A DNA stretch of 64,000 bases from Bugula neritina (GCA_964035545.1 OZ037765.1:32549504-32613503), one strand, 5' to 3'. Positions 14,150-41,557 are shown, counted from the first letter of the stretch. The notes: generated by a model from the sequence alone, not told the origin. Program-made: numbers and translations.

Positions 14150-17100
14150 ATGGGTGGTATTGCAAGCTCGTTCCATGCAGGTATGTGGTCATAATTAGTA
14201 GTTTACATTTTGGATACTTTTTTTAATACAGTTTCATTGTATATGTTGTCAATTTATCACTTTGGTTGAGTACTGATCTTGATATTTTTCAATAGTTAGT
14301 AGATTTAAATGAGGTCAATATTAGATTGTTTGTTTTGGTATTGGTTTAAGTGTTAACTCAGTGAGTATATAGATTACTTAAGGACTCTTAGTATTAGGGC
14401 TATTAGATTCTATCAACCCAATATACATTTAAGATGTAGTTTTAGTATTCAATTCAAGCTAATGTCAATGGATGTTATTCCAGCAAAATACAAGGTCTGG
14501 TTCCGGCATTCTGGAGAGCCTGCAATTAGCCAACCTTGGCATGATAACGAAACTAGGCTTTACACTAAGGAAGAGCTGATAAATAAAATTGAAGGCCATA
14601 CAATTACCCACATGATAATAGATGGGGATGTACCAACTCACCTTAATCTTCTAATTCCACACTTGAGTCATCTGGCTGTCAAAAAAATCAAGTCTGCAAA
14701 CACCCTCATAAAGTAAGGTTTATAGCTTGCAATTTGCAGTCTCTTGATGAGACATTTGTATTGTCATACTCTGATTAGTCTTCTTTTCAAAGTTGGGTTT
14801 TCTAAATATTGTAGGTAGATGAAAATAGTATTGTTCATCCTTGATTACAGCTTTTTTCTACAAAATAGCAACTAAACCTTGAAAAAAAATTCCTTCACAT
14901 TCTAGGACTAATTTTGTTCTATAATGCATCTTTGATTTTCTTTTAAAACTTCATGTAAAAATAATGTGACTACTAAGACCATACATAATAAAATTATTAT
15001 TTGACATAGTTATGAATCTTGTTCACCCTACATTCCTGCAGTTCATTCCGATCACGCGATGTTTTATATGTCTATCACGTCTGTTATAATACTTTTCAGT
15101 CTAAAATATTTAGTGTTACGCCTATATTTAGTACATTTACATGTAAAATATATTTTTTTATAATTTAATCAGTTAGAGCATAAACTGAAAATATTTAACC
15201 TTTCGGAAACTTTTTTGGGTTTTTTTAATGACTACAAAAACCATAAAGGAATATTGACATTTACTCAAAGCAGCTCTGCAATAGGTAACCAATTATGCAA
15301 TTTATTCGAAACTGTATAGTAGCTGCTGCAAGTAAAATTTTTGACTAGTTTTATGTTGTTTGAAAGTAAGTTTTTTACAGGAACTCTAATTAGCCCATTG
15401 ACTTAAAACTAAAATTATGACAATTTAAAAAATTGACGGGTATATATATATATTTTCTTAATTCTTAGTTTTACCATTTAAGGCATACAATAGCCTTCAG
15501 TGTACCATTGAAATGGCTGGTTTCTAAGACAATATATTCAAGTATCGTCATAATATGCAACAGCTCAGTATATATGTGTTTCCCAGATAGTGAGTGCTAG
15601 GATTAAATTATTGATTATTTTATTCTCCTAGTTTTTATGCCACTCAATATACTCAGTCTCTGTTGCTTTTGACTGCTGAGTTTTTAAAGTAAAATGAAGG
15701 TTGCTTTGAGAATGTACTTTTATTTGCTATTGTTTTTGCTTCATGTTCAAGTTTTTGTTAGCATAACTGGAATATGTAGAGGTATAAATATATTATTATA
15801 CTCAGTCATTTGATGCTTTTTCAGCTCTAACATTTTACATGTGGTGTAGGTTTGAGCTTTCTCAGAATATGGAGAAACCTAGTGATTTTATTGTCTGTCC
15901 TAACCCAGGCATCGCATTATATTATAATATAAAAGTGTGATATTTATCAAAGTGTATAGACGTTATTTTACCACAGTATGTTTTTGTTGAACCACCTGGA
16001 CAGGCGTATGTCTGAGGGTTTATCTGTATGCTATGTTTACAGCATATCTTCACTGAGGAATCTTGAGGTGTTGAATATCTCAGGAAATAACCTGTCTGAA
16101 GGTCTACCTGACGATGTATTCACATCCTTGCTATCATTGAGAGAGTTGAACATGTGGAACTGTAGACTGGAGACTTTACCAAACAGGTATGTGAGTTGGG
16201 TTTAAGGGTTGCATGACAAGCATTTGTGAAACGCATGCATTTTTTAGTATAACTCATGTACCCCTCAACGATTGGTTAAATAGCTCATTTCTTGAGCATG
16301 CTCTTAGGTCTTATGGGGTCTACAGGCTACAGTAGGAACTGAACTGTGAACGTGAATACTTTCAACGTCACTTCCTACTTTTTGCTGGTCACACTACAGT
16401 TCACACTACAAACGCTGAATGCTAACTGTCTCTAGCCCCTCTCCCCCCAGTTAACTTTTAACTAATAGGAATGCCGTAGCTTAGTCTCTGCTTTGCCTAC
16501 AGCAGCCAAAAATTAAATTTAGCGCAATTTATTGAGATTTACTAGCATAATTCAATAAGATTTACTAGCTATTTTTATCCTAATTTACTAGCTTCACTTA
16601 TATTCAAAATTACTAGCTTCATTTAATGAGATTTACTAGCTTTATTCAACCACATTCACTAGCATAACGAACTAAGTATGCTAATAAAATTCAGCCAAAT
16701 TAGAATAGCCAAATATGCTGATACAATTTTTAGCCAAATTTAGCTGCTAAATATTTATTTTCACAGCTAACTTTTATTAAGATTTGCATACGTAACTTCA
16801 TCATAATAATGCTAAGTAAAATAATATAGTTTTCGAATAACCAAATCAAATAATAATGCTCGCTAGTAGCACTTGGAATAAGTAAAAGCACTTAACCAAT
16901 CAGGGCATACCTGGCCAGTCAGTGGTTGGCTGAACGCATCGAGAAAAAACTGACGGTTGTGTTCAGAAATCAGACAGTTGTGACATCACAGAGTTTAATG
17001 CTTAGCCCCGAAAACCTTTCACAGTTCAGTTTCAACCATAGACTCCTTAAGTTTGTGAGATTAAAAAACTGGTTGTAAACATAAAATGTTGCTACATATT

Positions 17101-20100
17101 TTAGTATCCTACAGTTGAAAAATCTGGAGGTCTTAAATTTATCATGGAATAACCTATCTGAAGATCTACCTGACAACATATTCACATCCTTACTGCCATT
17201 AAGAAAATTGAACATGGAGTACTGTAAACTGCAAACTCTGCCAAGCAGGTATGTAGGTAGTATGTATACTAAATAATGAAATGAAAACATCATTGACTTC
17301 TGTACAAAACCTCAACATTATTAATTAATCAATTGGTGTTGGAGGTACTGTTGAGCCATGTTGGGGGGGGGGGGGGTATCGAACATACTTGAGTTATTTT
17401 GGGTCCTAATTTGTTGATATTTTCAGCACAACTTATTAAATACTTTCACTCTATGCTAGCCAAACCTTTTTGAATTTTGAGACTTTACAGCATTGTACTG
17501 GAGAGAATAGCAACTAGAAATACTAAGTTACTTAATGCCAGGAACACCATAGGCCAGTTACAAAACCCAGATGATAACAGCACAAATACCTGTGGGTGAT
17601 CACCCAAGTTAACTTATTTGTCAGTAGTTCATATTTTGTTCAATATTTGTGAGGTGATAGAAAAATATGCATATCATTTGAAAGCTGCATATGTTCTCTT
17701 TACAAGCGTGTTTTAAAAAATTAGATCAATTTGGTTTTTCCAGCTAGTACACTTTTGGGGGTCATTCCAGATAGAAGCTTTCCAGTTAGACGCTATTTAT
17801 TTATTTATTTTGGTACAATAATATATGTATTTTATGAGCAATTTATTTGAATTTTATTGAAATATACTGAGGTGAGGTGTGAGTAAGTGTGACTGTTGAG
17901 CATAATTCGGCATTATTAAATTTCCTTTAATTTTCAAATAAATTCCTTTGTTCTTTATTACCTTATTAATTTTACGTTTTCTGTACTTCTTGTTGTTTGA
18001 AAAAATATTTTAGGATAGGTATTTATTAAAGATAATGTCTATTATTAAGGTAATACTGTGTTTGTCCCTCACAATACTGTGAAAATTGTAATAATGTTAT
18101 TCCACATAATTCATATTAACTATTATTTTATTTTTAGCAATCAATATAAAAGTAATATAGGCATATTACTATATATATGTTCCAAAATAAAAAGTAGCAT
18201 CTAAGTGGGAAGTTTCTATCTGAGATGAAACCTAATTTTGAACCAATCTACTCAATTAAGAGTTGAGATAAAACTATTTTAGCACAAAACTTGCTCTGAA
18301 TCCAGCTTTTTTTGAATGAAATTCTTTGAAATTAAATTGGCGACACTGTAAAGGGCCATTAAGGATGTCGGATTCAAAGTTTGCAAAATTAAAACCTGTG
18401 TAATTTTTACTAAAATATTTCTATCTTAATGCTAAAATGAGTATATTGGTTCAAAATTGTAGAATTGAAAAACTAAAATCAGCTAACATTTTGAATTATT
18501 TTTCCAAAGAGAACATTTATAGTTTTCCAATGATATGCATATTGTCCAAACTTTGGTTAGACCCATAATTTCGATCACCATGTCATGCTAAATATCGTCC
18601 TTGGTATTCGAAATAAACCAACTGTTGATAAGGTCACTTCACCTCATTTAGTATACACTAAATAAAATCATAGTTCTATGAAAATTTAGCGGCTGATATG
18701 TATGCTTTTTGTTGTAAAATAATGAATTGTTAGCAAATAAATCCAAATGTTCAGGTATTTTTCAAATTTTTTCTCTGTCTCTTAATTGTTGAATGATTAG
18801 TAAAAACCCTACCGGTTACAGTAATGATTATTAATAATAATATGATGATAATTAATTAATAACAATGCATTCAGCTGTTGGGGTCTCAGAATTTTTTTAC
18901 ACCTTACAAGGCCTGCTAGTTGTGCTATAGCAATACACATGGTGAACAGAGTATTTCTTCCTGTATTAGTCAATGCTGTGCAATGAATGTATTCCCTAAT
19001 GTTGTTAGCATAAACTAGTTGTAAAAATTATTGTCCTGAAATCTTAAGTTTTTTATATGTGCATATTGTGTGGTGTGTTGCAGTATATCCCTACTAAAGA
19101 ATCTTGAGGTGTTAGACATATCCGGAAATAACCTAACTGAAGGTCTACCTGACAATATATTCACATCCTTACTATCATTGAGAGATTTAGACATTGGCTA
19201 CTGTGAATTGCCAACTCTACCAAACAGGTGTATATCAATTGTAGAAGATCAAATTAGACATTAGTCAATTTTATATTGAGACTTTGCCAAGTCATTTTTT
19301 ATACAGAGTGACAATGTTTTTATTAAGCTATTATTGAATCTGATATGTGTTATCAAGTGAAAGAAACCGTGAGCTTTTTTAATGTTTTTATTCATTGAAA
19401 TATAATTTAATTATAGTCATTGGTTGAGCCAATCATGGATTTTTTAATTTCTATTATCAATTTGGCAATGCTAAACGTGGCTAGTTAGATTCATTTGAAC
19501 TTTCATTTATTGCCATAATGTACATAAGCAAATTGTACTATTTTATGCTGTGAAGTGTGTGCATCTTTGTGTCATAACTTGTAGTTCCATTATTTTATAT
19601 AAATATTTTTGCAGGTTTTCACAATATTATAGAATAAATATTATACTATGTTTATCCAATATTGCAGCATATCTTCACTGAAGAATCTTGAGGTGTTGAA
19701 TATATCATGGAATAAGCTATCTAAAGGTCTACCTGACAATATATTCACATCCTTACTATCATTGAGAGAGTTGTACATGAGTTACTGTAAACTGCCAACT
19801 CTACCAAACGGGTGTGTATAAAGTAAAGCTAAACCATTTAGCCATTTTTCGATCATGTTGGCACTAGGCCTTGTTATAATAGACCATGTAAAACTCAGCC
19901 AATCAGCGAAGTGTACCAGGTCAATGTCTTACCATTGTAACTGATATAAAATCCTGCAAGTTCAATTGCAAAATGCATGCTTCTAAAAGCTAGTTGTGCA
20001 ACTTTTTTTTCATGCATTATTTAATTTCATATCTTAAATTGATGACTCTTGAAATGATTTTTTAAAATGTCTAAATTAAGTGTTTATAAAACGCAATTAA

Positions 20101-23100
20101 AAATTGCATGTCTAGAAAAATGACCTGGTACACTTTTGCAACTTAAGGCCAATTATTACATAACTGCCAGCTTAGTAGTTATTTGTTGTTGCAGCTTGAA
20201 TGGGTTATTGTTTAGCATTGGAAGCTTGCAGTAAACATCTGTGAATTTGGTACATGACTTTGATTGGCTGGTTTTTGAATGGCCCTTTAGTATATGCATC
20301 TGAATGCTGGGTAGTGTAGACTCAGCCTACATCTAGCTAATGTACAGTAGCCAATCCACAGTAGTATTACAAAATTTCTGTTTAACAAATGAAATATTCT
20401 GGTCATTTGTTTTGTACTTTACAATAGTAAATATTCTATTCAACTGGAATTTTATTGTATGTAAGCCATGGGAACTACTAAGAGGTTAAATCAACCACCC
20501 ATGCTAGTAATATTGTTGCAGTAATAGCAAGTCCACACCATGTAAATATACACATAAGCTATTATGTGCAGCTTATGAATGCTGAAATGACCCCATTTTT
20601 TACTTTCAATTTGAAAAAAATTGTATTACATATTCTGCCACTTCTGCACCAAGAATTTGTTTTCCTTTTAAATTTTGAAAATAGTAGTCAGTTTCTGCAG
20701 CAGTCAACTGCATCCACAATAAACAACGTAGGCTTTCAAATAAACTATAAATATATGAAATATTAGTGTGGAAACAATGTAATTTATTCATTGCTATGAT
20801 GGAAAATTACAAGATTATATAAAAGCTAGATATATATTTCTATAAAATGGCACAGGTAAAAATAACACATTTTTACTTCAAATTCTAAATTTCATCAGTC
20901 ACCAATAGTGGCTGTAGATTACAGAGAGCACAGCAGACTATCATAATCATAATCATAAGAATGGTCAGCCCACTAAGCAAAATCCAACTTCAATCTTTCA
21001 TTTGGGTTACTAACGCACTAAAGCATATAATGTAAGACGCGCAAAAAAACAGTGGTTTTAATGAAACATGTGAAGGAAGCAAACAAAAAACGTCTTCAAC
21101 AGAGTCAGCTGATATAGAGCAACAGAACTCATCTGACAGCCATCCTCATAGTCAGACTTCATCAGAAGTAACTGAGTTACCAGAATCATCAACTACTCAG
21201 AAAAAAAGATCTGCACATTCTATTGATAGACTAAAATCAAAAGTTGGAAGAAAAGGCTCAAAAAGTTCCACGTTTAAACAAAAAGCAACTATTGAAAAAG
21301 TAAGTTTTCAAAACTTTCACCACTACAGATAAGCAAACTAAATTCTATACTGAACTACCTACACGTTCTCTATACTATTTTTTAGCAAAGTGAAAATTAT
21401 GATTTTCTTATTGCAAAGATAGACTATGGTTTATTACAAATAAACAATGCAAGTCTCACTATGCTAAAATTTCTACATTGATTAAATTTGATGTGTAGTA
21501 AAACTGTCATTTTAATTAAATTTGTTGCAGTGTGAGTGCATCATTCATACATTTTTTATTAAAGATGTTGTTTTATGTAAGATATTCATAAATACCACAG
21601 TGGTCATCTGTATGCTTTTTCCTTTTTTAGTTTAGGGTTTTATTTAAACAAGCAGCAGTCTTTTATTTGTGGACAAATTGACTCACTTTCTCCAGGAAAA
21701 GTAAATTGTTTTGACTTAAATTTTCCTTGGTTATTTTAAAGCTTATCAAAAGTGGCCTCCTAATCTAATTTTTAGCTGAAACTAACTCAGTGTTTAAAAC
21801 TAAAATGGTTTACACTTGTTACTAGTTTCACTTATTCACAAACATTATTGAATGCTATTCTAGAAATAATATGGGTTTGAATTAGTTATAGTATAATTAT
21901 AAAATGAAGTAATAATTGTTTGTCAACACTATTTGTTTAAACTCATGACTTCATTCAAAGCATGTATTCATGCAACTAGCTTATCATGTACTGTTACAGT
22001 ATTATGTAACACATGTTGACACACATTACATTCTGTTTGAATGGTGATATATTGGGTCAAGCCTTCAGCTAGCAGTTCTTGAACTTCATAGTTGTTGCAA
22101 AATATAACTGAAGCTACTTACCAGAGGGTAAAAACTGCCAAATGAATACAAACTAAGCACAAAATTTATTTAGCACATACATTATAATTTGAATCATAAT
22201 TTAATTTTCATTCTTTATTTACTATATTTAGATTTATATGTCTGAAGATGAAAGTTCTCACTCTCAGAAAAAAGTTAACAGGACAAGATAAACTTTAATT
22301 GGCTTTGATGAAGCTGCGTCAAGGTTTACAGTTTCAAATACTTGCTAGCCTTTTTTATATCTCTAGATTGCTAGCAAGCAAAACCTTCAAAAACACATTA
22401 GATATTTTAGCAAGAGAACTGAACAATCTAATAGTTTTTCCAACAGGAGAGAAGCTGAACATCCCTCTGAGCTTTCAAAGCCAATATGCTAACATTAGGT
22501 GCATTATAGACTGCACAGAAATATCCATTTGCAAGCCTCAATCTGTAATCTACAGCCACCATTGGTAACTGATGAAATTTAGAATTTGAAGTAAAAATGT
22601 GTTATTTTTACCTGTACCATTTCACTAGAAATCTATATCTAGCTTTTATATAATATTCTTGTAATTTTCCATCATAGCAATGAATAAATTACATTGTTTC
22701 CACACTAATATTTCATATATTTATAGTTTATTTGAAAGCTTACGTTGTTTATTGTGGATGCAGTTGACTGCTGCAGAAACTGACTACTATTTTCAAAATT
22801 TAAAAGGAAAACAAATTCTTGGTGCAGAAGTGGCAGAATATGTAATACAATTTTTTTCAAATTGAAAGTAAGAAATGGGGTCATTTCAGCATTCATAAGC
22901 TGCACATAATAGCTTATGTGTATATTTATATGGTGTGGACTTGTTATTACTGTGAGCTACAATATTACTAGCATGGGTGGTTGATTTAACCTCTTAGTAG
23001 TTCCCATGGCTTACATACAATAAAATTCTAGTTGAATAGAATATTTACTATTGTAAAGTACAAAATAAGTGACCAGAATACTTCATTTGTTAAACAGAAA

Positions 23101-26100
23101 TTTTGTAATACTACTGTGGATTGGCTACTGTACATTAGCTAGATGTAGGCGGAGTCTCTACTACCCAGCCATCCAGATGCATATACTAAAGGGCCATTCA
23201 AAAACCAGCCAATCAAAGTCATGTACCAAATTCACAGATGTTTACTGCAAGCTTCCAATGCTAAACAATAACCCATTCAAGCTGCAACAACAAATAACTA
23301 CTAAGCTGGCAGTTATGTAATAATTGGCCTTAAGTTGCAAAAGTGTACCAGGTCATTTTTCTAGACATGCAATTTTTAATTGCGTTTTATAAACACTTAA
23401 TTTAGACATTTTAAAAAATCATTTCAAGAGTCATCAATTTAAGATATGAAATTAAATAATGCATGAAAAAAAAGTTGCACAACGAGCTTTTAGAAGCATG
23501 CATTTTGCAATTGAACTTGCAGAATTTTATATCAGTTACAATGGTAAGACATTGACCTGGTACACTTCGCTGATTGGCTGAGTTTTACATGGTCTATTGT
23601 AGAAATTTGAAATAATTTTTGACATGCCCTCAAAGTTATGAGGCTGACATAGTTGGAAAAGCTCCGAGTATAGAAATTCTAGATTTAATGCCCAGGATCA
23701 CATGCAATGAGTTCAGAGAAAACATTTAAAGACACCTCTAGTCTCTAATTCTGTTGATGTCCTGTGTGCAATCTTTGCTTAGTAAAAACTTTGTTCTTAA
23801 AAATAGTAGCTGAGTTACTATGACTATTAGTCTAGCTACGCCTTAGGGTTTCCTGTTGGAATATTAGTTCTATTTACTGCAATTATTATTTTAATTAGAA
23901 GAAAACTGCCAGGGAATGTTGGTTGAATTTCTGTTCTTTGCATATACATGGAATATGCATTTCTATATTTTTAAAATTACCTAGTGCTGTGTATTCAGCA
24001 GTGATTTCTGGGTGATTTTGTGTACAGTTTCAGTCAAAAGTGTAATTTTCTGTTCACTATTGTATAGTGAACAGAAAATTATACCTTGCATTATTTGACG
24101 GCATGTCTTTTTGTAACTGTACTCTATTCTCAACGAGTTGGCGTAGTTTTTGACCAATAAACCAATATACTTTTTCAATGCAATTTGCTGAGTTAGTATA
24201 CTGAGAGCAATTGAGCAATTTTGCTGCTGAGCCTAAAACAGGTGATACCAGTTTTATTATTTTTGAAGAACCTAGCATAATAAGGTACTTAATATAAGCT
24301 GTTCATATTACAAACCTGTTATTTGTTAGAATATATACACCATTCATGCTTTTTTGTTACAGCATATGTTCACTGAAGAATCTTGAGGTATTGAATATCT
24401 CAGGAAATAACCTGTCTGAAGGTCTACCTGAGAACATATTCACATCCTTACTATCATTGAGAGAGTTGAACATGAGTGTCTGTAGACTGGAAACTTTACC
24501 AAACAGGTGTGCTATGTTTTACATTAGAACACAACTACAGTGCTGTGAAAAAGTTTAAGGACACCTCCCTGTTTTCCATAATAGTAATGTTCCAAGCTAA
24601 TTTTAAAACATAACTGAAGCATTTCCATAAGCGTGGTGCCTATCAAAATGATCCTTAAGATCTCCTTATCTCATTCATATAGAATATAAGTGTCTCTTTT
24701 TACATCCTCCAAAAATTTGGGTGAAACAACAAGATACTATGCATATATGGGAATTATTCAATGTTCTCACAATTTGTGTGCACTGTATGACATCAGAATG
24801 TTTTACTCAAAATATAGAAAAATATTATATGGGGTTTGTTATACACCTTATAGCAGCATTGCAACACACAGTGCACTCAATTTTAGTATCAATATTTTGT
24901 TGGCCAGCCTTTATTCCTAATCAGAAGTCGACAGTGACTCGTACAGCTTCTCCAACTCATTTTCAGTCACGACATAATGCCAAGCATGAATTACAGACTC
25001 TGTGAGTGTCACCTTAGTTGTTGGCTTTTTTGAGAAGACTTTTTTACCCACTCTTGATCATAATTTTCTATAGGGTTCAAGTCAGGGCTTCGTGCTTGCC
25101 AGTTGAGCGTTGAGACCGTCTGCTTTTTTATCCACTCTTTAACACTCCTCGCCCAATGACATGGTGCATTGTCATCTTGAAATATGTAAATTACATTTGG
25201 AAAAAAAGGTTTTTATAATTGGAAGAAATTTAGCATTGAGATTAATATTTATATATTTTTGGGTACTAACATCATTCCAGAGCAAATACTGAGTTCACCT
25301 ACCATTTTGATGTTATACAATCCTAAAGCATAACACTGATTATAGGGTGCCTAATTGTTCTAAGTACACATTGGCGGCTATATTTCTCATACTGGTATCT
25401 TCTAACACAGTAGTTTTCAGGATGACTGTTCACATTAAATATGGATTCATCTAAAATAATTACTTTTTTTTCAAATCATTCACTGTCTAACTCCCATGCT
25501 CCCTGGCCCACCGTAAACGATTTTTTTGCTGCTTCTTGGTTGGTAGAAGCTTCTTCTTGCTTTGCGGCCATGTAAGCTATGGCTCAGCAATCTTACCTTA
25601 TCAGAAATGTCTAAGCTGGTGTTCTTGTTGATTCTGACCATTCCTTGCCAACTCAGGACTTGTTTTATGGCGATCCTTTTTGCTGATCCCAATGAGAACC
25701 TTGTAATCTCTAGGTGTGCTTATTTTTAGTCATCCACTTTCAGGTCCATCTGCTACACTGCCAGTCTTCATAAACTTCTTGATAATTTGATGTAAAGTTG
25801 TCTTTGCTTTGCCAACCTTTTCAGATATTTTCCTAATTGAATAACCTTTCTTATGCAAGAAAATTACTACAAACCTTGCTTTTGAAGTAAGATTTACACC
25901 TCTCATTTTGTCTATGTGCAGCAGCCAAGTGGTCACCATATAAAAGCTCACAACTGAAGTTGCGTTTATACCTCTGCTGAAAAAAGTACCGAGTTTAAGT
26001 TAATAATGCTTGTCAGGGCACTCCTTTATAGTCAAACTGAAACTCGTTGAAATCATATTGATGCGGTTGCTCACTTTCTGAAATTGAAATTTGACTCGCA

Positions 26101-29100
26101 TAATAGCTATTTGATGCCCTTTGTAAACGTCGTGAATTAGTGAAGCGGACAGCATAAAAGCGATAATTGAGAAGGCGTAGGCTATATATTTATAACCGTA
26201 TAAGTACGTTGTCTAATCGCCAAAGTAATAACTAAATAAAGATGTTTACAAGGAGTTATTACTCCTATTCTAAAATTGGCCGATTAAGTTATCACAGTAC
26301 AAAAATTTTTACGAGTGGCTTTTACAATGCAATGCAACTCGGTGAAATTTCAACCCGGTGAAATTTCAACCCGGTCAAATTGAAATTCTGACCGAAAATC
26401 GTGAAGGTATAAAGGCAACTTAAATAACAGATTTCAAATTACAAAGGGAAGTTATACTTTATGATAACATGATGCCATGCACAAAGTCAAATTTCACTAT
26501 TTAGTTTTTGTGGTAAAAAAGGATAAACTTTGGTTACATAAAAATACAGGAGTTGCGCTTTCCTAACTTCTTGTGTAGTTGGCCTGAAAATAGGTGGAAA
26601 ACATCACAACAGTAAGAATTAATAGGTGGAAGTTGTAGAACACATTCTAAGGGTCATTTTAATATATAGAACTTGCAGGAAAATATTAAGAACTTACAAG
26701 AAATGTCTATTAAACAAGATACATGGAAATTTCTGCAAGGGTCCTTCACATCACTGTATAATAGTAATCACTATATTCTTTATACGTGGCCTATTTATTG
26801 CTATTTCTGTTTTCAGTGGTGCAAACCTATCGACTCCTCCTCATTTTAAGTCAAATGGCCCATAGTCATAGGTCCCAATGTGACCAATCGAATTCAATCA
26901 AGCTAGGTTTTAGCTCAAAGACTCCACATATATTTTGGCCATTAGGTAAATGGTGGCTTCAGGGTAGTATTTTGGTTTTATAATAAGTGCCTTGAGTTGC
27001 TTAAGATAATGGCTTATTTACTGATGAGGTTTGGTTAGCTCGGCATCCTCAGCACTATAAGAACTGATACTCGCCATACAGTGCATATTCTCGCAGACTA
27101 AAATTTGCTCCATGAGTGGAAAAAGGTGTCCACTGTACGGAATGTAGCGTCAGTGAAATCCAAAAACTACTAGCTAATAATATTTGCGTTTAACTTTACT
27201 GCTCGCCTTGTCTCTTTGGCTACATGTCTGGGATAAATTAGGATTTCATTTTTAAATCCCACTCGCTTTCAATAAAACGCAATGGAATGTAGCACTAAAT
27301 TGAGAAAAGTGGGCTCGCTAAATAACTACCAGCCAATTAGGTGACTACGGCAGAAAATATTCGCATTTGTCGTTCAGAGCTACAAGTGCATGACATTCAG
27401 ATACAGTGGATACCTTTATCTACTTCCGTCTGTGAAAATACACACCGTGTGGCCCTAAGCTAATTGGCTTTCTGTTTGTGCACCAGAGAAGTGTTTCTAC
27501 TAAAAAGGTTTCTTCTTTTCTGTACTTTTCTCAGTAAAATATGTTATACTTGTATCCTATATTGCAGCATATCTTCACTGAAGAATGTTGAGGTGTTGAA
27601 TATATCAGAGAATAACCTATCTGAAGGTCTACCTGACAATATATTCACATCCTTACTATCATTGAGAGAGTTGAACATGGAAGACTGTAAACTCTCAGCT
27701 CTACCATACAGGTGTGAATAAATATAATATTGCCTTTTCATAATTGCAGAAATTTGAAATAGTTTTTGACATGCCCTCAAAGTTATGAAGCTGACATAGT
27801 TGGAAAAGCTCCGAGTATAGAAATTCTAGATTTAATGCCCAGGATCACATGCAATGAGTTCAGAGAAAACATTTAAAGACACCTCTAGTCTCTAATTCTG
27901 TTGATGTCCTGTGTGCAATCTTTGCTTAGTAAAAACTTTGTTCTTAAAAATAGTAGCTGAGTTACTATGACTATTAGTCTAGGCCTTAGGGTTTCCTATT
28001 AGAATATGAGTCCCATTTACTGCAGTTATTTTTTATTATTAGGCTGTGTGAGCTGGAAACACAGGTGTGCTGTTTTATAGATTGTAGAGTATTAAAATAA
28101 TACAATAAACATGCTTTACAAGCAATTGACTACAAAGCGCTATAAATTATTCACCATAGATATATTTGTAAGTTCATTCGCAAGTTACTATAATATGAGC
28201 ATCAACATGTTTTATTATGTTATAGCATGTCTTCTCTGAAGAATATCGAGATATTAGGCATATACTTTTCTCAGTAAAATGTGGTATACTTGTATCCTAT
28301 AAAACTCACGCAAGTTTATAGTCGCTATCCCTGTGAAAAACCCCTGATGGAAAGGGTTTTTGTTAAAGCGGGCTAAGGACTTGTTTAAATGAGGCACAGG
28401 AGCAATTATGACTGGATGCTCTTCCTAACATCACCAATGACCTCTGTCCGGACTCGAACACAGGACTCGAACACATGACCTTCGTGTTCACAAAGCAAAT
28501 GTTTTAACCCCTTGACCACGGCTGCTCCCTAACTTATACTTGTATCCTATATTACAGCATATCTTCACTGAAGAATGTTGAGGTGTTGAATATATCAGAG
28601 AATAACCTATCTGAAGGTCTACCTGACAATATATTTTCATCCTTCCAGTTGCTGAGAGAGTTGAACGTGGGAAACTGTGAACTGTTAACTCTACCAAATA
28701 GGTATGTGTTGCTGTTTTTATTATGCTCTTGTAAATGCTGTTTTTCTAATATATAATATAATGCTCTTGTATCTAATTAATTGTTAGCAATATATTATAA
28801 GTATAGATAGATAATATGGACTTGTGCTGGTTTTTGTAAATGTAAATGTTTGCATAAAACGTGAACAGTAAGAAAACAACTCAAAAAAGTCCCTTATGCC
28901 TATTCTAAACCTAAAAACTGGTTTGGGGAAAGTGGCTTAACAATAAACCAACCATTTCTTGGCAGAAATATGAGCAAAAAGTTTAATTGCATATTTAATG
29001 CTAAAAAATTAAAAGTTTTATAAACGCTATTATTACTGTCTCCATATTAGCTATCGGACAGTACCCTTTTGCTTCTTTTTCTTTGCACTCTTTTTTTCCT

Positions 29101-32100: not shown

Positions 32101-35100
32101 AGTCATGAAATAGCGTAGCTGCCATGGTTTGTACTTCTTTTTTATTCATAATAATAGTGTTAGAACACACATTATTTTGTTATAGAGTATTTTCATTATG
32201 CTGATCACTTCCACTGTCTTTCCATGAATCCATCTCAGTTCGATATAAACCAGATCCATCTAATGTGATCAGTGCGATTGTTTTTCCATGGCATTCTAGG
32301 TTAAATCTTGAGTAGTTGCCTTCTGTTATCCGCAGAGTACTTGAATAAACTTTGCTAGTATAATTTGTTCACCCACCCGAGAGACTAAATCTACTTTGAT
32401 TAAAAAACGGAGTTGTTGATGGTGCTTTATGCTCTTAATTTTTTTAGCTTAGCAGCTTATATAAAATTAATAGCTGCTCAGCAAATTATTCACTAACCTA
32501 CAAGATTGTTAGCAACAAATAACTCACGGGAGCAATTTTTATTTGTCGAGTAAATTCAATTTAAGTGTCCTGTTTTTACTTTCTGCGATCTATAATTTTA
32601 TAGAATTGAGCTTTCTCAATCATTGTAATGGAAGTCAAAGTTTTTTCATCTGAAAATGTGGCCACCGTGATTCTTCACTTTGCTTATAAGTAACTAACAA
32701 TAAGTTGTCATTTTTATTAGCACACAAAAATTTAGCAAGCAGTCTTTTTCTATTTCTCAGATCGATCGTCGTTATGTTATCTGTCTACATACCCACAAAT
32801 TTTAGTTGCTTCGTTCCAGGAGCCTTTGTGTAATCTAGAATAAAATATATGACACTTGTTGCAGTGATCTGAGATTACTGGTGTGTAATTGTAATTTCGG
32901 CAGCAACTATCAAAATTAAATATTTATATAACTCTAAATTGAAAGACTGCACCATTGACTTTTTTCATTCTATCTGCATAGCTAAATGAAGTATAGTCTG
33001 CTAAGTATTGGCCTGCTTTAACGGTTCTATTTCAATTGTAGAATACAGAATCTACAGAAGTTAGAGAACCTGAACATATCAAGGAATCAATTCACCAGTT
33101 TACCATCTCCTGTGTACACATTAAGTAGTCTCCGAGTCATGAACATATTGTACAATCACTCCCTGACATCCTTAGATCCTGAGATACTACAGCTAACTCA
33201 ACTTCATACACTGGATGTATCTGGTTGTAATGCTCTCACATCTCCTCCACGAGAAGTATGTGAGAGCGGAGTAGATGCTGTGAGACAATACTACACAGAC
33301 TTGGCTAAAGGAGCTGGTAGAAGTCTTCCATTTGCTACTATAGCTGTGCTGGGTAATACGATGGCTGGGAAGACCAGTCTAATCAGAACATTACAGAGTT
33401 CTGACAAAAAGAGAGTTCTGACTAACAGAGGGCCAGATGCTGTGAGGGATGAGACAACAAAGGTGTTTAATGTTGAAGAGGTGGAAGTGGATGGTACAGT
33501 ACTCCGTGTCATTGATATGGGAGGCCAGGAGGTCTACCATATCACCTATCAACTGACACTGAGACAGAATTGTATTCCAGTCATAGTAGTCAACATGGAA
33601 CAGTATGATGAGATTTCAAAAGAATCAACACACAGAGAAGCTGTTAGAAGATTAGCCTTTGATTACATGTCTCACCTCTACCTGGCTAACCCAACTCTGG
33701 GTGCTCCAAAACTTATCTTCACACATACAGATAAGTTTCAAAATGCAGAATTTCAGAAGCTTCGAAAGAACTTTCTAGAAACTTCCAATCAACTGTGTGA
33801 GGAAATGATTAGAGAAGAGAAAGCACTGGGTGGAGAATTTGCTCAAATCAAACATTTCAGTGAATCAGCTGAAGGAGTTTTTCTTGGTGAGGACATTTAT
33901 GAGGTTGGGAAAGATGATAAGTATGAAGTGTTTGACCTGATCAAGGAGTCTCTTCTTCAAAGCAGTCAACATTTTGTGAAACCGTTACCTCTGGTTTGGG
34001 AAGAAGTGAATGAAAAAGTGCTGTCTATTCCCTCTGTGTACAGTACCTTTGATGAGGTACTGAAATATGTGCAAACAGAACTTCAACACATTGAGTCAAG
34101 TCAGCTGGACATAATCCTCACATACATGCATAACTGCGGCAAAGTCTTGTGGTATAAAAATATCAGCTCTCTCCGGCCATACATATTCTACAAGATTTCA
34201 GAAGTTACCAAACTTCTCTGTGTCTTGTATCACCACGATTCTAACATATGGCAGAGTAGAGTTGACAAGTTCCAGCCGTATTACTCAAAGCCCGAAATGC
34301 GTTTTGAGAAACAGGACTTTGAGGAATCTGTTAATTGTTTCACAGACACTGGTTTGATGATGCAATCTCTTCTTGTTTATTTGATTCAAAATGAAACAAT
34401 ATTTCACAGTTCTGAGAATGTTGAAGTTGCTATCCGCTTGCTCCAGACATTCCAGTTGTTGTACGGTCCTATACATGGTGGCTCTGCAAAGCCATGTTTT
34501 GTTGTACCACAGTTTGCCAGCGATTACTACAGAACCTCATCCTCTCAATCACAAAATCTGCTCCTTCAAGTTGGAACGCAGTTCAATGGTCTAGCCCTGC
34601 CACGCTATGTCTACCAGCAAATGACGGTTGGCTTGTTGGAGTTGTTTCCAGACGAGTTTGCTGTGATGGAAGTGAAGAGAAATGGAGCCAATGTCTATCA
34701 AGATGGAATCTACACGCAGCTCGTACACGACTATAAATCTAGAAAAGTGTTACTCCAGGTGTCATCTAATGCTGCCAACATCAGCAGAATGTGGGAGAGA
34801 CTTATCACCACCAACAACAACATCCTTAGACATGTTCTAAAAACTTGGACAGCAAGTAGAGCAGTCACTACAAGCTACTGTGCTCACTGTCTTCTCCTAC
34901 AAGTTCCTTGTCCTAAAAAAATGCTCAATCCTCCATGGTGTCTTCGTTCCTTGAAACATCCTACACCAAATACCAGGCTGTGCAGTGGATCTTCAATGAC
35001 ATTGTGTAACGATGAGGCGATTCCCAGTGCTCTACTTCACCCTTGTGAGTTGATATTTTCTGCTTTTACTGTGATATCTTTTGAATAATTGACTTCTCTT

Positions 35101-38100
35101 TACTTTTTGTTTTGAATTAATTTTATCTTTTACATTAATAGGCGAGTCTTTGTCCGAGAGCGAAGTTGCAACGATACACGAGTTTGTTGACCATCTTGTG
35201 AAAGTTGGGAATACTCGAAATGAATTACGTGTTTCAGGTATGTAGCTTGATACTAAGTGAGCAATAGTAATTGTGTCATTCACAACTAAGAGTACGAAAC
35301 AGATAATACAAATTATTTCTAACTGCAATATCTTATAAAGTCCTTTCTGATAATCATAAATCGTCTGTTAAATTTATAATGATATTTTCTCAGATCTAAA
35401 ATGTCTCTGTTTTGTGTTAATGCACTTTCATGTAAACTGTTATTTTGTAAATGTTGATTTAGAACTAGATTTTATTCTTGTTTAGATGAGGCTTTGGCAG
35501 AAGCAGAAACTGAGAAGTTGGGCAATCAACTAAAATCGGAAAGAGAACAAAACACTCCATCCGGTAGTTCCTAAGTATTTGTAGGCGTCTTCTAGCAGTA
35601 TTTTTTATATTTTTAGCACTTGCTGAAATATAGGCCTACAAAAATATATTATTATAATGTAAAGCTAAACTAAATTCTTTCTAATTTTTTTATTCTTAGG
35701 TTTCTATTACTATGCTGCTACTGCTGCTGCTACTATTACCACTACCACTAATCCTTAGAAATGTAGTGTATAGCTTGCGTGTGTGCCAATTTGCTTCAGT
35801 CGGAAAGTACTTCGACTTGTTTATTTAGGAAGCAGTCATATAAAACTAATTCAAGTGAAATCAAAATCGAAGCAAGTGTTAACAAGTTTTTGATTAGCAA
35901 AACTGTATCAAATATCTAAAATTAAATTGAATAAAATTTTGAAATTACTATAAAATAAAGCTTGAAAAACTTTTATAGGATTTGTGCAATATTTTTGAAA
36001 AGTGTTCATATTGAAACTTTTTGATCTAGTAAAGGAAAACACAGATGGCCTAAATACATACAAAATATGTAATTATGTCATTTGAATGCATGAATCAAGG
36101 TAATTAATATCTGCATAACAATATTGTTTAACAAATTTAAAAATAACATAGCTAAATGAAATTACCATTATATCTCTCAGAATTGTAATGTAATAGTAAA
36201 CTGCCAAAATGGCTCTTTTGGCTCTCGTACACTGAAGGCTCAGTTGAGTGATGTACTGGCCCAAGAAATCTTATTACTTCACGTGACTGTTAATGTGCCG
36301 GTATGATGTAAACATGTAAACAAAGTAGCATGGCTGTGCCATCTACAAGGAGTAGGATTTAGTTTGCTTGAGATTGTATCTGGACCTGTCAAAATTTGTA
36401 TTTTGGTTGTCAAACAATAAATGCTCAGAGCTAGAAAGAAGTTCATCTATTTCTGTGTATTTGTAGGATCTTCTTCAGTTATCGATGATGAGTTGAGTGA
36501 TCTTTCAGATGATGAGTTCATGGAGCAGAGTGATACCTTACATAGACAGAGTGTAAGGCCAACCTCAAACCCCAGAATTCAGAGCCTGTTTTATGATACT
36601 GAAAAGGTATAAAGAAAAATATTTTGAGAGTTCATAACAATTCTTAAAAAACTTTTACACCTTAACAATCATCAGTGGACAATTCAATTTCGATAAGTGG
36701 ATTTTTTGCATCATGAAAGCAACCTGCTCAGATCATAGTTCTGCTATCACTTTTTGGCTCATGTTCAATCTTCAATAATTACTTTCTTTATCAACTAATT
36801 TACTTCAGTCATGTTATGTTTTAATAAATAGGAATATTTATTGTCGCAGACTGAATGATAATTGCAATGTGAAACCTGTTACATCATAAGTTGTAAGTAT
36901 AGTTGCAAGTTGTAAGTAGCAAGTTGCAAGACGCAAGTGTGGAGATAAGTGAACAAATGCTAGGTTTTTATACCAGTTTAAAAGGTTAGCTATTGTGTAG
37001 TAACCATATTGAGTGTGTAGAAAGCATAATAATATAGCTGGCATAGCTGTGGTGATACATGAAAAGCTATACCTAATGAATTAGGGAAAAGCTCTCCCAG
37101 CTTATGTAAAGTCCCAACCAGTCATTTAAGTAAAAGCTATGATGTAATCCTACTACATAGGTTCTCATCAATATGATTTCAATTAATTTCAGTGAAGCTA
37201 TAAAAGGGTGCTTATCTGGGTTGAATGAACTCTACCTCGGTGCTTCAATTTCTATTATTTATATTTGAATGAAACCTTTGTCTTTCATTTATTCATCATA
37301 GCTGCAAGCGATTTATCAAAAACAGTTCTGGTGAATTGCGAAGTTATCATTTCCAATTTGTACAGAAAGCTGAAATTATCCTGAAAGAATCTTCGTTTTT
37401 CAACTCCGTTTGTCAAATAGTCTGCCTATATGAGCTTAACACTGCATAACCTACTAGATAAAAATGGCACAGGTAGCAATGGCACAAATGGCAAAGCAAG
37501 TAAAAATGGCACATTTTCAATATTAGGGTTTGGAGTAATGGTTGTGGGTTTCAAATGGGGGGTTTAGGTTTGGGGAAAATTCACCATCAGTGTGTCATTT
37601 TAACTACTTTTCCATTTGCGTCATTATTACCTGTGCCATTTTATGCTGTCGGGCCAACCCCAACAAGACAGCTTGATAATGAGGTTGCTGAGAGTTCACT
37701 CCATCGGTGCTGTAAAGGTTCAAACCAGCTTGTTAGTTTCTTCTGCTACTCAGTGGATTGTGCTTGTCGTAAGCAGCCTGTTTGTTTACCAATCTCCGGG
37801 CTTTTATTCACTCAACAGCAGCTATGATCTTTTATTTCCCTAATTGTCGGCAATCAATTCAATTTTAATTTGCATAAGATATTATGGTTACTATTGATGT
37901 TCTTCAATTGATAGATATTAGCTGGAAAGTTTATGCAGCATAGCCAATAATAATTTGTATTGGCAATTTAGCCATTGACACAAATTTTCACTGAGTATGC
38001 ATTAGTAAGAAAACTTTCAAGTACATTTTTTTCAATGTGTCTAAAATAAGATTTCTTCATCTTTCTTTTCTGTGCAGGTGTTCAAGATGTCTCCCATAAG

Positions 38101-40195
38101 AGGTAGAGCCTTGATAATCAATAACGCATCTTTTTCTGATCAGCATCGTGGTCCCGAGCTAGATGTTATTAATATAACAGACATGCTCAAACAGTTCAAG
38201 TTCCAAGTTTCAATGTTTGACGACATCACAGCTGAGGTGAAATTAACTCTTGTGAAAGTTTTTTTTAAAATGGCAACTTGTTAGATTTTATTCACTCAAT
38301 GTCTTATTTTTCCAAGGCCTATTCAATCCCATTAATGCAAATGGAAAGCTGCTACTGTAAATTATTTTCTAGTGCTACAGATTTTTTGCAGTAATAGAGC
38401 TACTTTTAGCTACTTATTATTGTTTAAATCAAAGTGACTTTAAAGTGCAATAATTGTACCTTACAAATATGTTGTGCTCTAAGCTGCACGGATAATGAAT
38501 GCTCTAGGTCACTTATACTCGTTCAAAACATCCAACTCATTTAAGAAATAATGGCATGGTTCGTTGTGTTAACAGTTACATGTATATAATCTTTAACATA
38601 AAATCCAATTGTCCCAGGTTTAAAGATCAAGTAAAAATCTTCCTTATCAGAACTAAATATTGTAGCAAAGCTTTAATGAACCTTATTCTTTTATTTAAAA
38701 ACATCCACCAATGAGGAATGTTTTGTTGTTTTGAAATAATAGCCAGGTTTTGTATCTTCCCAATACCAAGGTTTCTCTGATTATTTTCAACAGGATATTC
38801 TCCGTGTGATCAGGAATGAGGTTGAGGATGACCGCCATGAATACTATGGCACATTCTGGCTATGTATTATGGCTCACGGGTCTGGTGATGATTTTGTCTG
38901 TGGTTCTGATGGTGCTCTTGTTAGTCTAAAAAGTGTCTATGCTTTACTTTCACCATTCAACTTTCCTGGTATGGCTGGGAAACCAAAGGTGGTAGTTATT
39001 GAGACATATAAAGGAGGTAAGTGGTTGGAGAACTCATGATAGCACGTATACTGCTCTCACATTTTGTGCACATCTAATTTTACTGTATCCTGCGTCATAT
39101 TTGGGTTTTATAGTTGGTGCCCCAGGCAATATTTCATCTCACATGGGACACACCCTTGTAAATTTTCACATATTATATTGTATGGGAGGGAGGGTCTATT
39201 ATTTTCTTTCTATTGACATTTCTTGTCCCATTTTAATTTTTATTTTTGGAATCCAAATTCCTTCATCAGCGCTACATAGGAACTCTACAATTCCTGCCTT
39301 TGAATTTGTTTAACTTTATTTACACATGTTCTCCTTTTAAGTGGAACCAGTAAACAAGTCTAGTGGCCTACATTTTTTTAATCTGCATGTAATTTAATTC
39401 CTATCAAATGTCAGGCCCAGAAAACTACTAAACATTTAGTGTCAATTAACAGGGAAGTACAAGTTAAGGCATAAGTGTTGAAAGCTTTTTTTTAAATTTG
39501 GATACAAAAGGTTCTTTGCATACATAGTTTGATAATCTATTTGCATATATAATTTTGAAATATTTAGAGTTTCCAGATTCAGAAGAGAAATCTGTTGAGC
39601 CATCAGCGGTCAAAGTCCCTTCCAGCGAAACTCCATCTTTCCCTCCAATCACACAGTTGGAATGTGATGATTTGCTGATAATCACATGCAAGTCACATAG
39701 ACATGATATTGTTTACTTTCTAATTATCATCATATAATTTTTCCTAACAATATTTTGTAACAGAAATATATTTCTTGTTCATAAAACTATGATTGCAGCT
39801 TTTTGTAATGGCAGCTTTAGTGTTAATGGAACTGTTTTACTTTATAATTTTCTGGTCACCTACCATTGTTTCAACTCTAGACTTTTGCCACATATTTATG
39901 TTGTAGCTGGTCTATCAAATAGAGATTTCAATCATAGCTCCACGCTAATCAACTGCCTAGTTCGAACTATGTACAGGCATGCTTGTCACAGAGATATGCA
40001 TGAAATCTTCAAGATTGTAAGTATAGGTGGTAGCGGTCTCCCAAGGCTGAAAATAATTGTGTAAATGTGTTTATACTGTGGTAATCGAACATCTCAGATT
40101 GACCAAATCTACTCAATTTTTGTATGCTTTCTTACACAAAACTCCCGGATTGTGATCAACTGCTACTACTACTACTGCTACTACTACTGCTACTG

Positions 40196-40227
<32 letters not shown>

Positions 40228-41557
40228 GCTACTATTGCTACTACTACTACTATTGCTACTACTACTACTGCTACTGCTACTACTACTACTACTACTACTG
40301 CTACTATTGCTGCTACTACTACTACTGCTACTGCTACTACTACTGCTACTACTACTGCTACTACTACTACTACTACTACTACTGCCACTACTAATACTAC
40401 TACCACTGCTGCCAGTACCACTACTGCCAGTACTATTACTGGCTATTAAAGGCATATTTCAATTCCAGATATAAGCAAGTACCTACAAGTTTGCCACGGC
40501 ATTACTGTGACAAACTGACATTGCTAAATTGTTGCATTCTAGTATACTTTATTACTCACTTTGTTGCTTTTTACTGTACAATAAATGGAGTTATATAGAA
40601 AGTTTTAATAAAAATTGGAATATTATAAACTTACAGTACTTATATGTGGCAGTTGACATAGTTATTAAAGTGCAAGAGACTCGGCAAATACTGGCAACAC
40701 CCTAGGGAAATGGGGAAATATTATCTGGTGTCTTATCTGGCAGCAATTTGTTAAATTGTTGCAGGCAGTTTTTATTTTCACAATTTGTTGGTTTGAGTCA
40801 TTTGTTAGTATTTCAGAGTAGCTTTAATATTACGGCTAAAAGCAACACCACTTTGTTTCATAAAATTACAGTGGGGTAGGCTAGCAAAGTTTAGCTCAAT
40901 GAGTAATATTATTTTTTCAGAGTGCTTTCTGCTACTTAGATTTTGGCAAATATCAACTTCAAAGCAGAAAAGCAGTTAAATGGTTATTTAGCCCTGCTCA
41001 CGCAAAACAACCAAGTATAATAGATTTCATTTTAGGTAGAACACTTGCAAAAAGACAAAATAAAAGTATTTACATGTATATTTGGTCTCTGTCCTTTCTT
41101 CTGAGCATTGTTTAGAACTGGGTGGGGTTGATAAATTTTGTATTACAAGCAACATAATTGAATTAATACATAATGGCACAGCTATAAATGTACCAGTCCA
41201 AGCATGACTTAGTAATAATTATCAAATAATGCCTACAGATATTTACTATACTATACTCTTAGTTTGTCACAAATAAGGTCTATAATGGCTGACCTCTACT
41301 GTACAGTCTAGTACTAGTACCAGTAGCTGCACCTAATTGGGAAAACAAATCATGTTGGCTAACAATTTACTTAATTTCCTGATGAATTTTAGGTGGAGCA
41401 CCGGGTGAGAGAATATTGGATTAAAACCCGAAAAATCGGACAGTCAACATTGATTATAGACACGCTGACAAGTTTTAGGAAGCTTTACCTGTTTCCTGGA
41501 TATGATGGCTCCCGCAAGCATGGACTTGGGTATACTTCTCGTAGACGAGGCTCATAA
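14150..41557 (+). CDS. Gene B: LRR-Roc-COR-pseudocaspase fusion protein (~1453 aa)
   Basis: Exon model: 14150-14180, 14484-14712, 16043-16186, 17105-17248, 19084-19227, 19668-19811, 24363-24506, 27568-27711, 28558-28701, 33042-35044, 35142-35237, 35486-35563, 36467-36606, 38078-38236, 38794-39016, 39568-39687 (GC donor), 39907-40016, 41393-41557 (TAA). All junctions are phase-compatible and give one open frame with LRR, Roc G1/G3/G4, COR and caspase p20/p10 motifs. Confidence 0.8.
14484..14712 (+). CDS. Gene B N-terminal exon (LRR cap region)
   Basis: Part of ORF 14462..14716. Acceptor ttattccAG at 14483, donor GTAAGG phase 2. KYKVWFR aligns with gene A KIKAFYIR. Confidence 0.7.
16043..16186 (+). 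CDS. Gene B LRR cassette exon 1 (two LRRs, 48 aa)
   Basis: AG..GT, 144 nt, phase 2-2: ISSLRNLEVLNISGNNLSEGLPDDVFTSLLSLRELNMWNCRLETLPN. Confidence 0.9.
16325..17045. mobile_element. Degenerate MITE in LRR intron
   Basis: ctacagtaggaactgaactgtgaa (~16328) vs ttcacagttcagtttcaaccatag (~17019); internal tttactagc repeats. Confidence 0.45.
17105..17248 (+). CDS. Gene B LRR cassette exon 2
   Basis: 144 nt, phase 2-2: ILQLKNLEVLNLSWNNLSEDLPDNIFTSLLPLRKLNMEYCKLQTLPS (not in the ORF track on the + strand). Confidence 0.9.
17665..18545. mobile_element. Degenerate inverted-repeat element in LRR intron
   Basis: atgcatatcatttgaaa (~17667) vs tttccaatgatatgcat (~18524); ccagatagaagcttt..ttagacgcta vs tagcatctaa..aagtttctatctgag. 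Confidence 0.45.
19084..19227 (+). CDS. Gene B LRR cassette exon 3
   Basis: 144 nt, phase 2-2: ISLLKNLEVLDISGNNLTEGLPDNIFTSLLSLRDLDIGYCELPTLPN. Confidence 0.9.
19668..19811 (+). CDS. Gene B LRR cassette exon 4
   Basis: 144 nt, phase 2-2: ISSLKNLEVLNISWNKLSKGLPDNIFTSLLSLRELYMSYCKLPTLPN. Confidence 0.9.
19881..23595 (+). mobile_element. ISL2EU (PIF/Harbinger-related) non-autonomous foldback transposon with ~1.05-kb inverted arms
   Basis: Arms 19881-20925 and 22542-23595 are near-perfect reverse complements; AT target-site duplication; THAP-tail-like NGQPTKQNPTSIFHLGY (~20960) and transposase remnant LMKLRQG...IIDCTEISICKP (22299-22541). Confidence 0.85.
22299..22541 (+). pseudogene. Truncated ISL2EU/Harbinger DDE transposase fragment
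   Basis: HTH_Tnp_4-like LMKLRQGL..ILASLF.IS and first catalytic motif IIDCTEI, cut off at the right inverted arm. Confidence 0.8.
23596..23900 (+). repeat. Intronic direct repeat copy 1 (copy 2 at ~27742-28040)
   Basis: About 300 bp nearly identical downstream of LRR exon 4 (once the transposon is removed) and LRR exon 6. Confidence 0.9.
24363..24506 (+). CDS. Gene B LRR cassette exon 5
   Basis: 144 nt, phase 2-2: ICSLKNLEVLNISGNNLSEGLPENIFTSLLSLRELNMSVCRLETLPN. Confidence 0.9.
24538..26756 (-). mobile_element. Decayed Tc1/mariner transposon
   Basis: TA|CAGTGCTGTGAAAAAG left end, degenerate ...ttcacatcactg|TA right end. Minus-strand HTH (LHKKGYSIRKISEKVGKAKTTLHQIIKKF..TGSV, 25730-25906), QDDNAPCH (~25170) and SPDLNPIEN (~25075), with frameshifts and stops. 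Confidence 0.8.
27568..27711 (+). CDS. Gene B LRR cassette exon 6
   Basis: 144 nt, phase 2-2: ISSLKNVEVLNISENNLSEGLPDNIFTSLLSLRELNMEDCKLSALPY. Confidence 0.9.
28043..28262 (+). pseudogene. Two relic LRR exon fragments (3' end with donor at ~28043-28070; 5' end with acceptor at ~28226-28262)
   Basis: gctggaaacacag|gtgtgct resembles the exon 5 3' end; tatag|c atg tct tct ctg aag aat atc gag ata tta (MSSLKNIEIL) resembles the exon 5' end and then runs into a stop. Confidence 0.6.
28302..28534 (-). mobile_element. tRNA-derived SINE with 17-bp TSD
   Basis: Minus strand gggagcagccgtggtcaaggggttaa (A box) ... gttcgagtcc twice (B box); flanked by tatacttgtatcctata at 28285-28301 and 28535-28551. 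Confidence 0.8.
28558..28701 (+). CDS. Gene B LRR cassette exon 7
   Basis: 144 nt, phase 2-2: ISSLKNVEVLNISENNLSEGLPDNIFSSFQLLRELNVGNCELLTLPN. Confidence 0.9.
29387..30820. mobile_element. Non-autonomous DNA transposon with degenerate long TIRs
   Basis: gtactagctgatttctttatggctgattttgcaatcggcaaaaa (~29415) vs ttttcgccgattgcaaaatcggccatagagaaatcggctagtac (~30737); ttatttttctgcttgcgttttattggcagatgg is also inverted near 30682. Confidence 0.65.
30822..31866. mobile_element. PIF/Harbinger-type MITE
   Basis: 14-bp TIR tagcttattcacac / gtgtgaataagcta, flanked by TTA on both sides. Confidence 0.7.
33042..35044 (+). CDS. Gene B large exon: terminal LRRs, Roc GTPase, COR
   Basis: ORF 33112..35088. 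G1 GNTMAGKTS, G3 DMGG, G4 THTD; COR motifs PLVWEEV, YMHNCGKVLWY, FVVP; CAHC tail. Confidence 0.93.
36838..37117. repeat. Dispersed repeat; inverted copy at ~63037-63278
   Basis: Shared aatatagctggcatagc..gtgatac.tgaaaagcta..tagggaaaagct.tcccagcttatgtaaagtc. Confidence 0.75.
37459..37644. mobile_element. Small foldback element
   Basis: aaaatggcacaggta ... tacctgtgccatttt inverted ends with a G/T-rich core. Confidence 0.55.
38078..41557 (+). CDS. Caspase (peptidase C14A) p20/p10 domain exons of gene B, catalytically altered
   Basis: VFKMSPIRGRALIINN..F; CIMAHG (His codon 38875-38877); GSDG; GKPKVVVIETYKG (Tyr 39007-39009 at the Cys position); DDLLII; STLINCL; GQ....DTL..FRKLYLFPG. Confidence 0.88.
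40161..40440. repeat. (TAC/TGC)n microsatellite
   Basis: Visible run in the last intron of gene B; source of the poly-L/Y/S/V ORFs. Confidence 0.95.

Follow-up and report, generated by a model that had tools for sequence, protein, structure and literature searches.

A 64,000-nt stretch of the genome of the cheilostome bryozoan Bugula neritina (GCA_964035545.1 OZ037765.1:32549504-32613503; the whole stretch is hereafter the window) carries an array of seven equal-length leucine-rich-repeat (LRR) exons, W1-W7, on the plus strand. The explanation that we consider probable as a whole is that this array forms the sensor arm of an intracellular one-chain receptor with the order N-cap-LRR-Roc-COR-caspase, one of about 90 in the genome. 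Each exon adds two turns to the LRR solenoid, exon number ranges from 3 to 9 per gene, and germline exchange moves exons together with intron sequence, both inside a gene and from one gene to another. The selection behind this is most likely an arms race with pathogens.

All seven exons measure 144 nt, are flanked by AG and GT, begin and end in phase 2 and are open, with ordinary splice sites throughout; they share 72-91% DNA identity, and each encodes two LRRs (25 + 23 aa) recognised by Pfam. An earlier note, made from the sequence alone, had placed seven such exons exactly where we find them (Table 1); it mentioned neither the downstream Roc-COR and (pseudo)caspase domains nor the wider family, which numbers about 90 genes. 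Over most of 14400-19694, including parts of LRR exons 1-4, unitigs from sequencing run X1 show zero differences from the window, and this letter-for-letter identity rules out an assembly artefact as the source of the array. LRR-exon splicing is confirmed at the level of the family: in a paralog-type RNA contig, the LRR exon ends exactly where the donor is predicted (19227) and is followed by sequence resembling the Roc exon.

The array lies within a predicted gene of 17 exons; its 1450 codons contain no internal stop, and one GC donor is required. Frame continuity was checked for each exon by phase arithmetic, exons were searched individually, and a database protein from the bryozoan Watersipora was folded as a stand-in. 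The predicted domain order is an N-terminal exon, LRRs, a Roc-COR GTPase and a caspase domain in which Tyr replaces the catalytic Cys. Roc motifs are intact (P-loop GNTMAGKT, G3 DMGGQ, G4 THTD) and the Pfam Roc match reaches 31.2 bits against a cut-off of 27, giving the G1-, G3- and G4-bearing Roc domain expected of ROCO proteins. The COR-A match that follows scores 18.6 bits, under its 35.3 cut-off; a COR domain directly after Roc is nevertheless likely, because full-length homologs do carry COR Pfam matches. No NACHT or NB-ARC (STAND ATPase) match appeared in the pieces scanned; the switch domain is Roc, and the gene may work in an NLR-like way without being an NLR. An Atlas search with the N-terminal exon returned no match.

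The His-Cys dyad of active caspases (peptidase C14A) is incomplete in the window copy, where His is present and Cys is Tyr. Catalytic motifs of paralogs are QACSG, HACSG or ETCSG, with both His and Cys kept in the six paralogs read and in both Watersipora loci. The window gene appears to be a chimera: the genes that it matches at 86-87% in the Roc exon share no more than 34% identity with it in the caspase exon, and the nearest caspase exons (55-56%) sit at other loci. Among paralogs, the terminal LRRs encoded within the Roc exon (33043-33250) are more variable (77% identity) than the Roc domain (94%).

At the scale of the genome, the family comprises at least 88 Roc-COR exons (66 plus 22 further), 130 caspase-exon matches and at least 150 LRR exons of the 144-nt type, none of those scored having an internal stop. 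The family is clustered at C1 33.8-35.1 Mb and elsewhere, and the window gene is located 1.2 Mb outside the main cluster. From 200 kb of that cluster we read 37 further LRR exons, bringing the sample to 44 with W1-W7. All 37 are 144 nt with AG/GT boundaries, their copies per gene number 4, 5, 5, 9, 3, 8 and at least 3, and surface signatures are distinct in 44/44 exons.

The nearest named proteins come from Watersipora subatra (33-37% identity) and bear a MFHAS1/MASL1-type database name; the layout there is the same, with exons of 141 nt. Contigs closer than the Watersipora proteins were found in a JGI sample labelled AY690838, a Bugula neritina accession, and the source of 12 comparison exons; they represent paralogs, with 83-89% Roc-exon identity, rather than alleles of the loci read here. 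Public Watersipora gene models (L022, L023) end before the downstream caspase exons and omit the N-terminal exon and LRR exons (L023 35355, L022 1327), and the architecture is therefore hidden in databases. Two metagenome scans gave no matches, a literature search found no paper describing a bryozoan Roco-caspase family, and the family is apparently undescribed.

At least three caspase types (QACSG, ETCSG, HACSG) follow closely related Roc-COR exons (L001-L020), which suggests that effector modules have been swapped between genes. Signs of birth and death are present as well: a nine-exon paralog (L011/L010 near C1:33968810) has a frameshift near the start of its Roc exon, and an eight-exon paralog (L019 near C1:34240250) has a stop in its caspase small-subunit exon.

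Sequence variation in the LRR exons is concentrated on the predicted binding surface. Entropy is highest at codons 14, 38, 39, 36 and 41, followed by 16, 43, 11 and 34; apart from codon 43, these lie on the outward side of the strand or in the loop after it, within the LxxLxLxxN/CxL motif. The residues that the earlier note listed as variable (codons 14, 38-39, 41 and 43) are indeed so, but codon 43, listed there among the exposed positions, falls past the Asn/Cys ladder, off the strand face. In a Watersipora model of the LRR region, a regular solenoid with a predicted local distance difference test score (pLDDT) of 88, strands occupy the homologous codons 9-11 and 34-36; this model and the LRR consensus place the variable codons on and just after the parallel strands, in agreement with the surface location proposed for them. 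The same sites vary in the 12 JGI-sample exons and in five Watersipora exons.

Site-wise analysis revealed the anticipated excess of change at exposed codons. In paralogs, exposed codons have a nonsynonymous rate (dN) of 0.37, compared with a synonymous rate (dS) of 0.06 over the whole exon. Within the window the scaffold is less uniform than the near-invariance first described: only 20/47 codons are invariant, and scaffold dN is 0.12 with dS 0.40 (dN/dS about 0.3). Near-invariance is a property of the paralog cluster, not of W1-W7. Likewise, the proposed concentration of substitutions on exposed sites is clear at eight sites defined independently from the paralogs, which hold 16/43 extra states in the window exons (p=0.0012), and marginal at codons designated exposed a priori (p=0.07). 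Comparison of models M2a and M1a gave a likelihood-ratio statistic of 274 in paralogs and 12.4 (p=0.002) in the seven window exons; trees were built with FastTree, and custom code fitted M0, M1a and M2a on a fixed topology, using a single branch scale.

Since recombination inflates codon-model tests, the stronger evidence is a tree-free, intron-controlled comparison. In five exon pairs with both flanks homologous, a-priori exposed codons are 20.6% different, introns 2.8% and the non-exposed part of the exon 3.5% (37/180 versus 84/2967 differences, p=9e-19). At the hot codons, picked from the same data, the first two positions show 7.7-fold diversity over fourfold sites (5.3-13.4). Third positions vary far less than first positions, and invariant codons adjoining the hot sites lack silent change (Cys40 identical in 44/44 exons, Leu35 in 43/44). 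Silent positions beside hot codons are thus almost fixed, which favours selection and led us to reject regional hypermutation. The scaffold is conserved, and strong diversifying selection acts on codons 11, 14, 16, 34, 36, 38, 39 and 41.

The introns of cluster genes A-E record how the array has been assembled. Those between LRR exons form shared types, 90-97% identical, that recur across genes and positions; the nearest relative of an exon's upstream flank is often not that of its downstream flank; and scaffold identity is equal within and between genes (95.6 versus 95.8%). Because intron types are mixed across genes, germline exon exchange is indicated, and the process, as read from these sequences, is duplication, unequal crossing-over or conversion across genes. 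The exon shuffling that had been proposed as the origin of a modular recognition repertoire thus finds support, as a germline process, in mosaic intron types, 3-9 exons per gene and positive selection on the strand face. Decay of linkage with distance is not significant (p=0.19); linkage is at background level everywhere, and that test therefore cannot separate conversion from recurrent mutation.

The window gene is an older outlier with unrelated flanks; W4 and W6 nonetheless share a 99% identical downstream intron block, and a probable relic of an LRR exon precedes W7. A 1352-nt contig in run X5, which belongs to another study, joins exon 1 (95% identical) directly to the intron before W4. 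As both parts are single-copy in the genome assembly, this contig is probably an allele without W1-W3, that is, a three-exon deletion haplotype; the expected haplotype variation in exon number is accordingly probable between samples, on one X5 contig. The exon 1 region (14413-14777) differs by 5-6% among samples X1, X2 and X5, all possibly under one species label, reflecting either high polymorphism or cryptic species.

In the receptor that we propose, the concave face would bind a changing ligand, either a pathogen or parasite molecule or non-self tissue. Binding would shift the Roc nucleotide cycle and the COR dimer state, for which the Roc-COR monomer-dimer cycle offers a precedent (PMC6337361), and dimerisation would turn on the caspase, leading to cell death or inflammatory cleavage. 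Because it lacks the catalytic Cys, the window copy may act through a partner, as a c-FLIP-like activator, a brake or a decoy. The repertoire would be inherited, as many genes multiplied by many haplotypes.

Several points weigh against this proposal. The immune function is read from pattern only. RNA from the window copy was absent from the runs examined, with at most 0.15 of its Roc words present per RNA run. Recombination, with 45% of site pairs incompatible, inflates the codon-model statistics, and the 7.7-fold excess shares its data with the choice of hot sites. The deletion haplotype is a single short-read contig that a cryptic species or a locus absent from the assembly could also explain.

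A rather unlikely addition to germline diversity is regulated or stochastic exon skipping, which would yield many LRR isoforms per gene (up to 2^7). Every LRR exon is symmetric, and skipping has been reported for Ectocarpus ROCO genes (PMC11378527) and human NLRP3 (PMC6642158), so that skipping probably occurs at a low level. Human genes, however, commonly have LRR exons of equal length that preserve the frame, among them a 141-147 nt class (PMC6642158), which makes symmetry weak evidence and 2^7 only a possibility. No skipped LRR-exon junction was seen in unitigs, which cannot phase these repeats; splice sites of W1-W7 are all ordinary; and no decayed full-length exon or mutually exclusive exon arrangement is present. 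The main transcript probably includes all exons.

High polymorphism, a colonial host and a death effector would also suit receptors used chiefly in colony allorecognition, to decide fusion or rejection, and less in sensing pathogens. Fungal heterokaryon-incompatibility NLRs offer an analogue, and bryozoan allo-incompatibility is listed in PMC8195603. We nevertheless regard a primarily allorecognition role as quite unlikely: by eye, without a predictor, the model has no signal peptide or membrane segment, and about 90 loci are spread over many chromosomes, whereas known animal allorecognition genes encode surface proteins at one complex.

That the window copy is a decaying relic whose variation is neutral drift appears distinctly improbable. 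Its lost catalytic Cys, required GC donor, unseen transcript, transposon-filled introns and position 1.2 Mb off the main cluster fit decay, and broken paralogs exist; yet all 17 exons are open, the P-loop is intact, scaffold dN/dS is about 0.3 and positive selection is still detected within the seven exons. We hold it very improbable that the genes form an NLR-scale intracellular immune or self/non-self system of one-chain Roco-caspases in which cells or zooids of a colony would also differ in the recombination or splicing of their LRR cassettes, giving a lophotrochozoan an anticipatory repertoire, with dead-caspase copies such as the window gene and dead-GTPase copies such as its head-to-head neighbour as paired regulators. 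Somatic or clonal DNA rearrangement or targeted, VLR-like hypermutation of exons among the zooids of a colony is barely plausible: near-identical donors abound in the clusters, linkage between variable sites is near zero and budding colonial life would spread variants, but the gene is complete in the germline, the near-fixed Cys40 and Leu35 and quiet third positions fit selection, and X1 unitigs match the assembly exactly.

The proposed germline-encoded receptor resembles several known systems. The earlier note's comparison with brown-algal LRR-ROCO genes is apt: both are expanded LRR-Roc-COR families with equal-length, symmetric phase-2 exons, variable exon number and positive selection on the concave face. 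In Ectocarpus and Saccharina the exons are 72 nt and encode one LRR, and alternative splicing is annotated (PMC3341825, PMC11378527); there, as here, the immune role is a proposal. Here, exons encode two LRRs in 144 nt (141 in Watersipora), and a C-terminal caspase is present, with none reported in the algae. No algal sequence was among the protein-search matches to the window gene. As the host here is an animal, convergence is the most likely relation between the two exon systems.

Bacterial LRR-AP-GTPase(Roc)-COR-effector conflict proteins likewise combine fast-evolving N-terminal LRRs with Roc-COR, in several paralogs per genome, and their variable C-terminal effector can be a caspase (PMC8195603). 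They have no introns and therefore no exon cassettes, reach at most about 11 copies versus about 90 here, and share only 21-32% local identity with the window Roc-COR. Animal ROCO proteins of the MFHAS1/MASL1 type, whose name the Watersipora homologs carry, share the kinase-less LRR-Roc-COR core; vertebrate MFHAS1/MASL1 is a single conserved gene without a caspase.

Fixed-length, frame-preserving two-LRR exons and a sensor-switch-effector chain are also found in vertebrate NLRP/NOD genes (PMC6642158), but the switch there is a NACHT ATPase, the caspase is recruited rather than fused, and exons are not homogenised across genes. Lamprey variable lymphocyte receptors (VLRs) have interchangeable LRR modules and hypervariable concave residues too; they are extracellular and somatically assembled from an incomplete germline gene. 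The VLR comparison drawn earlier fails, and membership of that type is rejected: the bryozoan gene is a complete, open, intron-containing germline gene with a GTPase and a caspase, and each module is an exon with its own splice sites. In c-FLIP, a caspase fold carries Tyr in place of the catalytic Cys, as in the window copy; the latter differs from c-FLIP and pseudocaspases in keeping His, having no DED domains and being fused behind Roc-COR.

These genes point to a large, apparently undescribed animal receptor family in which an LRRK2-type Roc-COR switch would directly gate a caspase. They also point to a second origin of exon-cassette LRR diversification on a Roco backbone, probably independent of the one in brown algae. 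For bryozoan immunity and colony recognition they supply concrete candidate genes whose variable sites are mapped, and the family would offer a cell-death read-out for control of the Roc-COR dimer cycle by LRR binding.

Table 1. Features of the predicted receptor gene and its introns (window positions)
Feature	Coordinates	Strand	Evidence
First coding exon (N-terminal cap, 83 aa), end phase 2, one copy at the DNA level	14462..14712	+	homologs: 37-43% paralogs, 32% Watersipora
LRR exon W1, two LRRs, phase 2-2	16043..16186	+	exon anatomy, Pfam LRR
LRR exon W2, most diverged copy	17105..17248	+	
LRR exon W3	19084..19227	+	paralog-type RNA contig exits exon exactly at 19227
LRR exon W4; downstream intron sequence common to W4 and W6	19668..19811	+	
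Foldback-type insertion, young, ~1-kb inverted arms 96-99%, wholly within intron W4-W5, brackets no exon	19875..23601	.	
LRR exon W5, nearest W1 (91%)	24363..24506	+	
LRR exon W6	27568..27711	+	
Probable relic: decayed 5' LRR-exon piece (26/36 nt), then copy of the intron end preceding W6 and W7	28226..28300	+	
LRR exon W7	28558..28701	+	
Large 2003-nt exon, starts in phase 2: last LRRs, Roc GTPase, COR (likely)	33042..35044	+	Pfam Roc
Three linker exons: 35142-35237, 35486-35563, 36467-36606	35142..36606	+	splice sites and phase arithmetic; third has paralog matches
Caspase large subunit, first exon	38078..38236	+	
Caspase catalytic exon: His kept (MAHG), Cys to Tyr (ETYKG)	38794..39016	+	Peptidase_C14 26 bits, cut-off 21.4
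Caspase linker and small subunit: 39568-39687 (GC donor, inferred), 39907-40016, 41393-41557 (stop)	39568..41557	+	

The foldback-type insertion is highly repeated in the genome, as judged from read depth. Exon skipping driven by it was considered and rejected, its inverted arms bracketing no exon.

A second, very diverged LRR-Roc-COR gene lies on the minus strand (1736-~11900), apparently head-to-head with the array gene. Its P-loop is degenerate (GPSESQKNT), its closest paralog is at most 30% identical, its phase-2 LRR exons measure 144 and 147 nt (6193-6050, 5187-5041), and a caspase-exon match falls just outside the window. The juxtaposition of a putative dead-GTPase gene and a dead-caspase gene is reminiscent of the paired NLRs of plants. 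Further downstream, a young long terminal repeat (LTR) retrotransposon (45144-50572) has identical LTRs and one open 1482-aa reading frame in which integrase precedes reverse transcriptase, as in Gmr1-like elements, together with a SCAN-like match, and minisatellites occupy 51252-52260 and 54110-55685, with 29/22-nt and 44-nt units.

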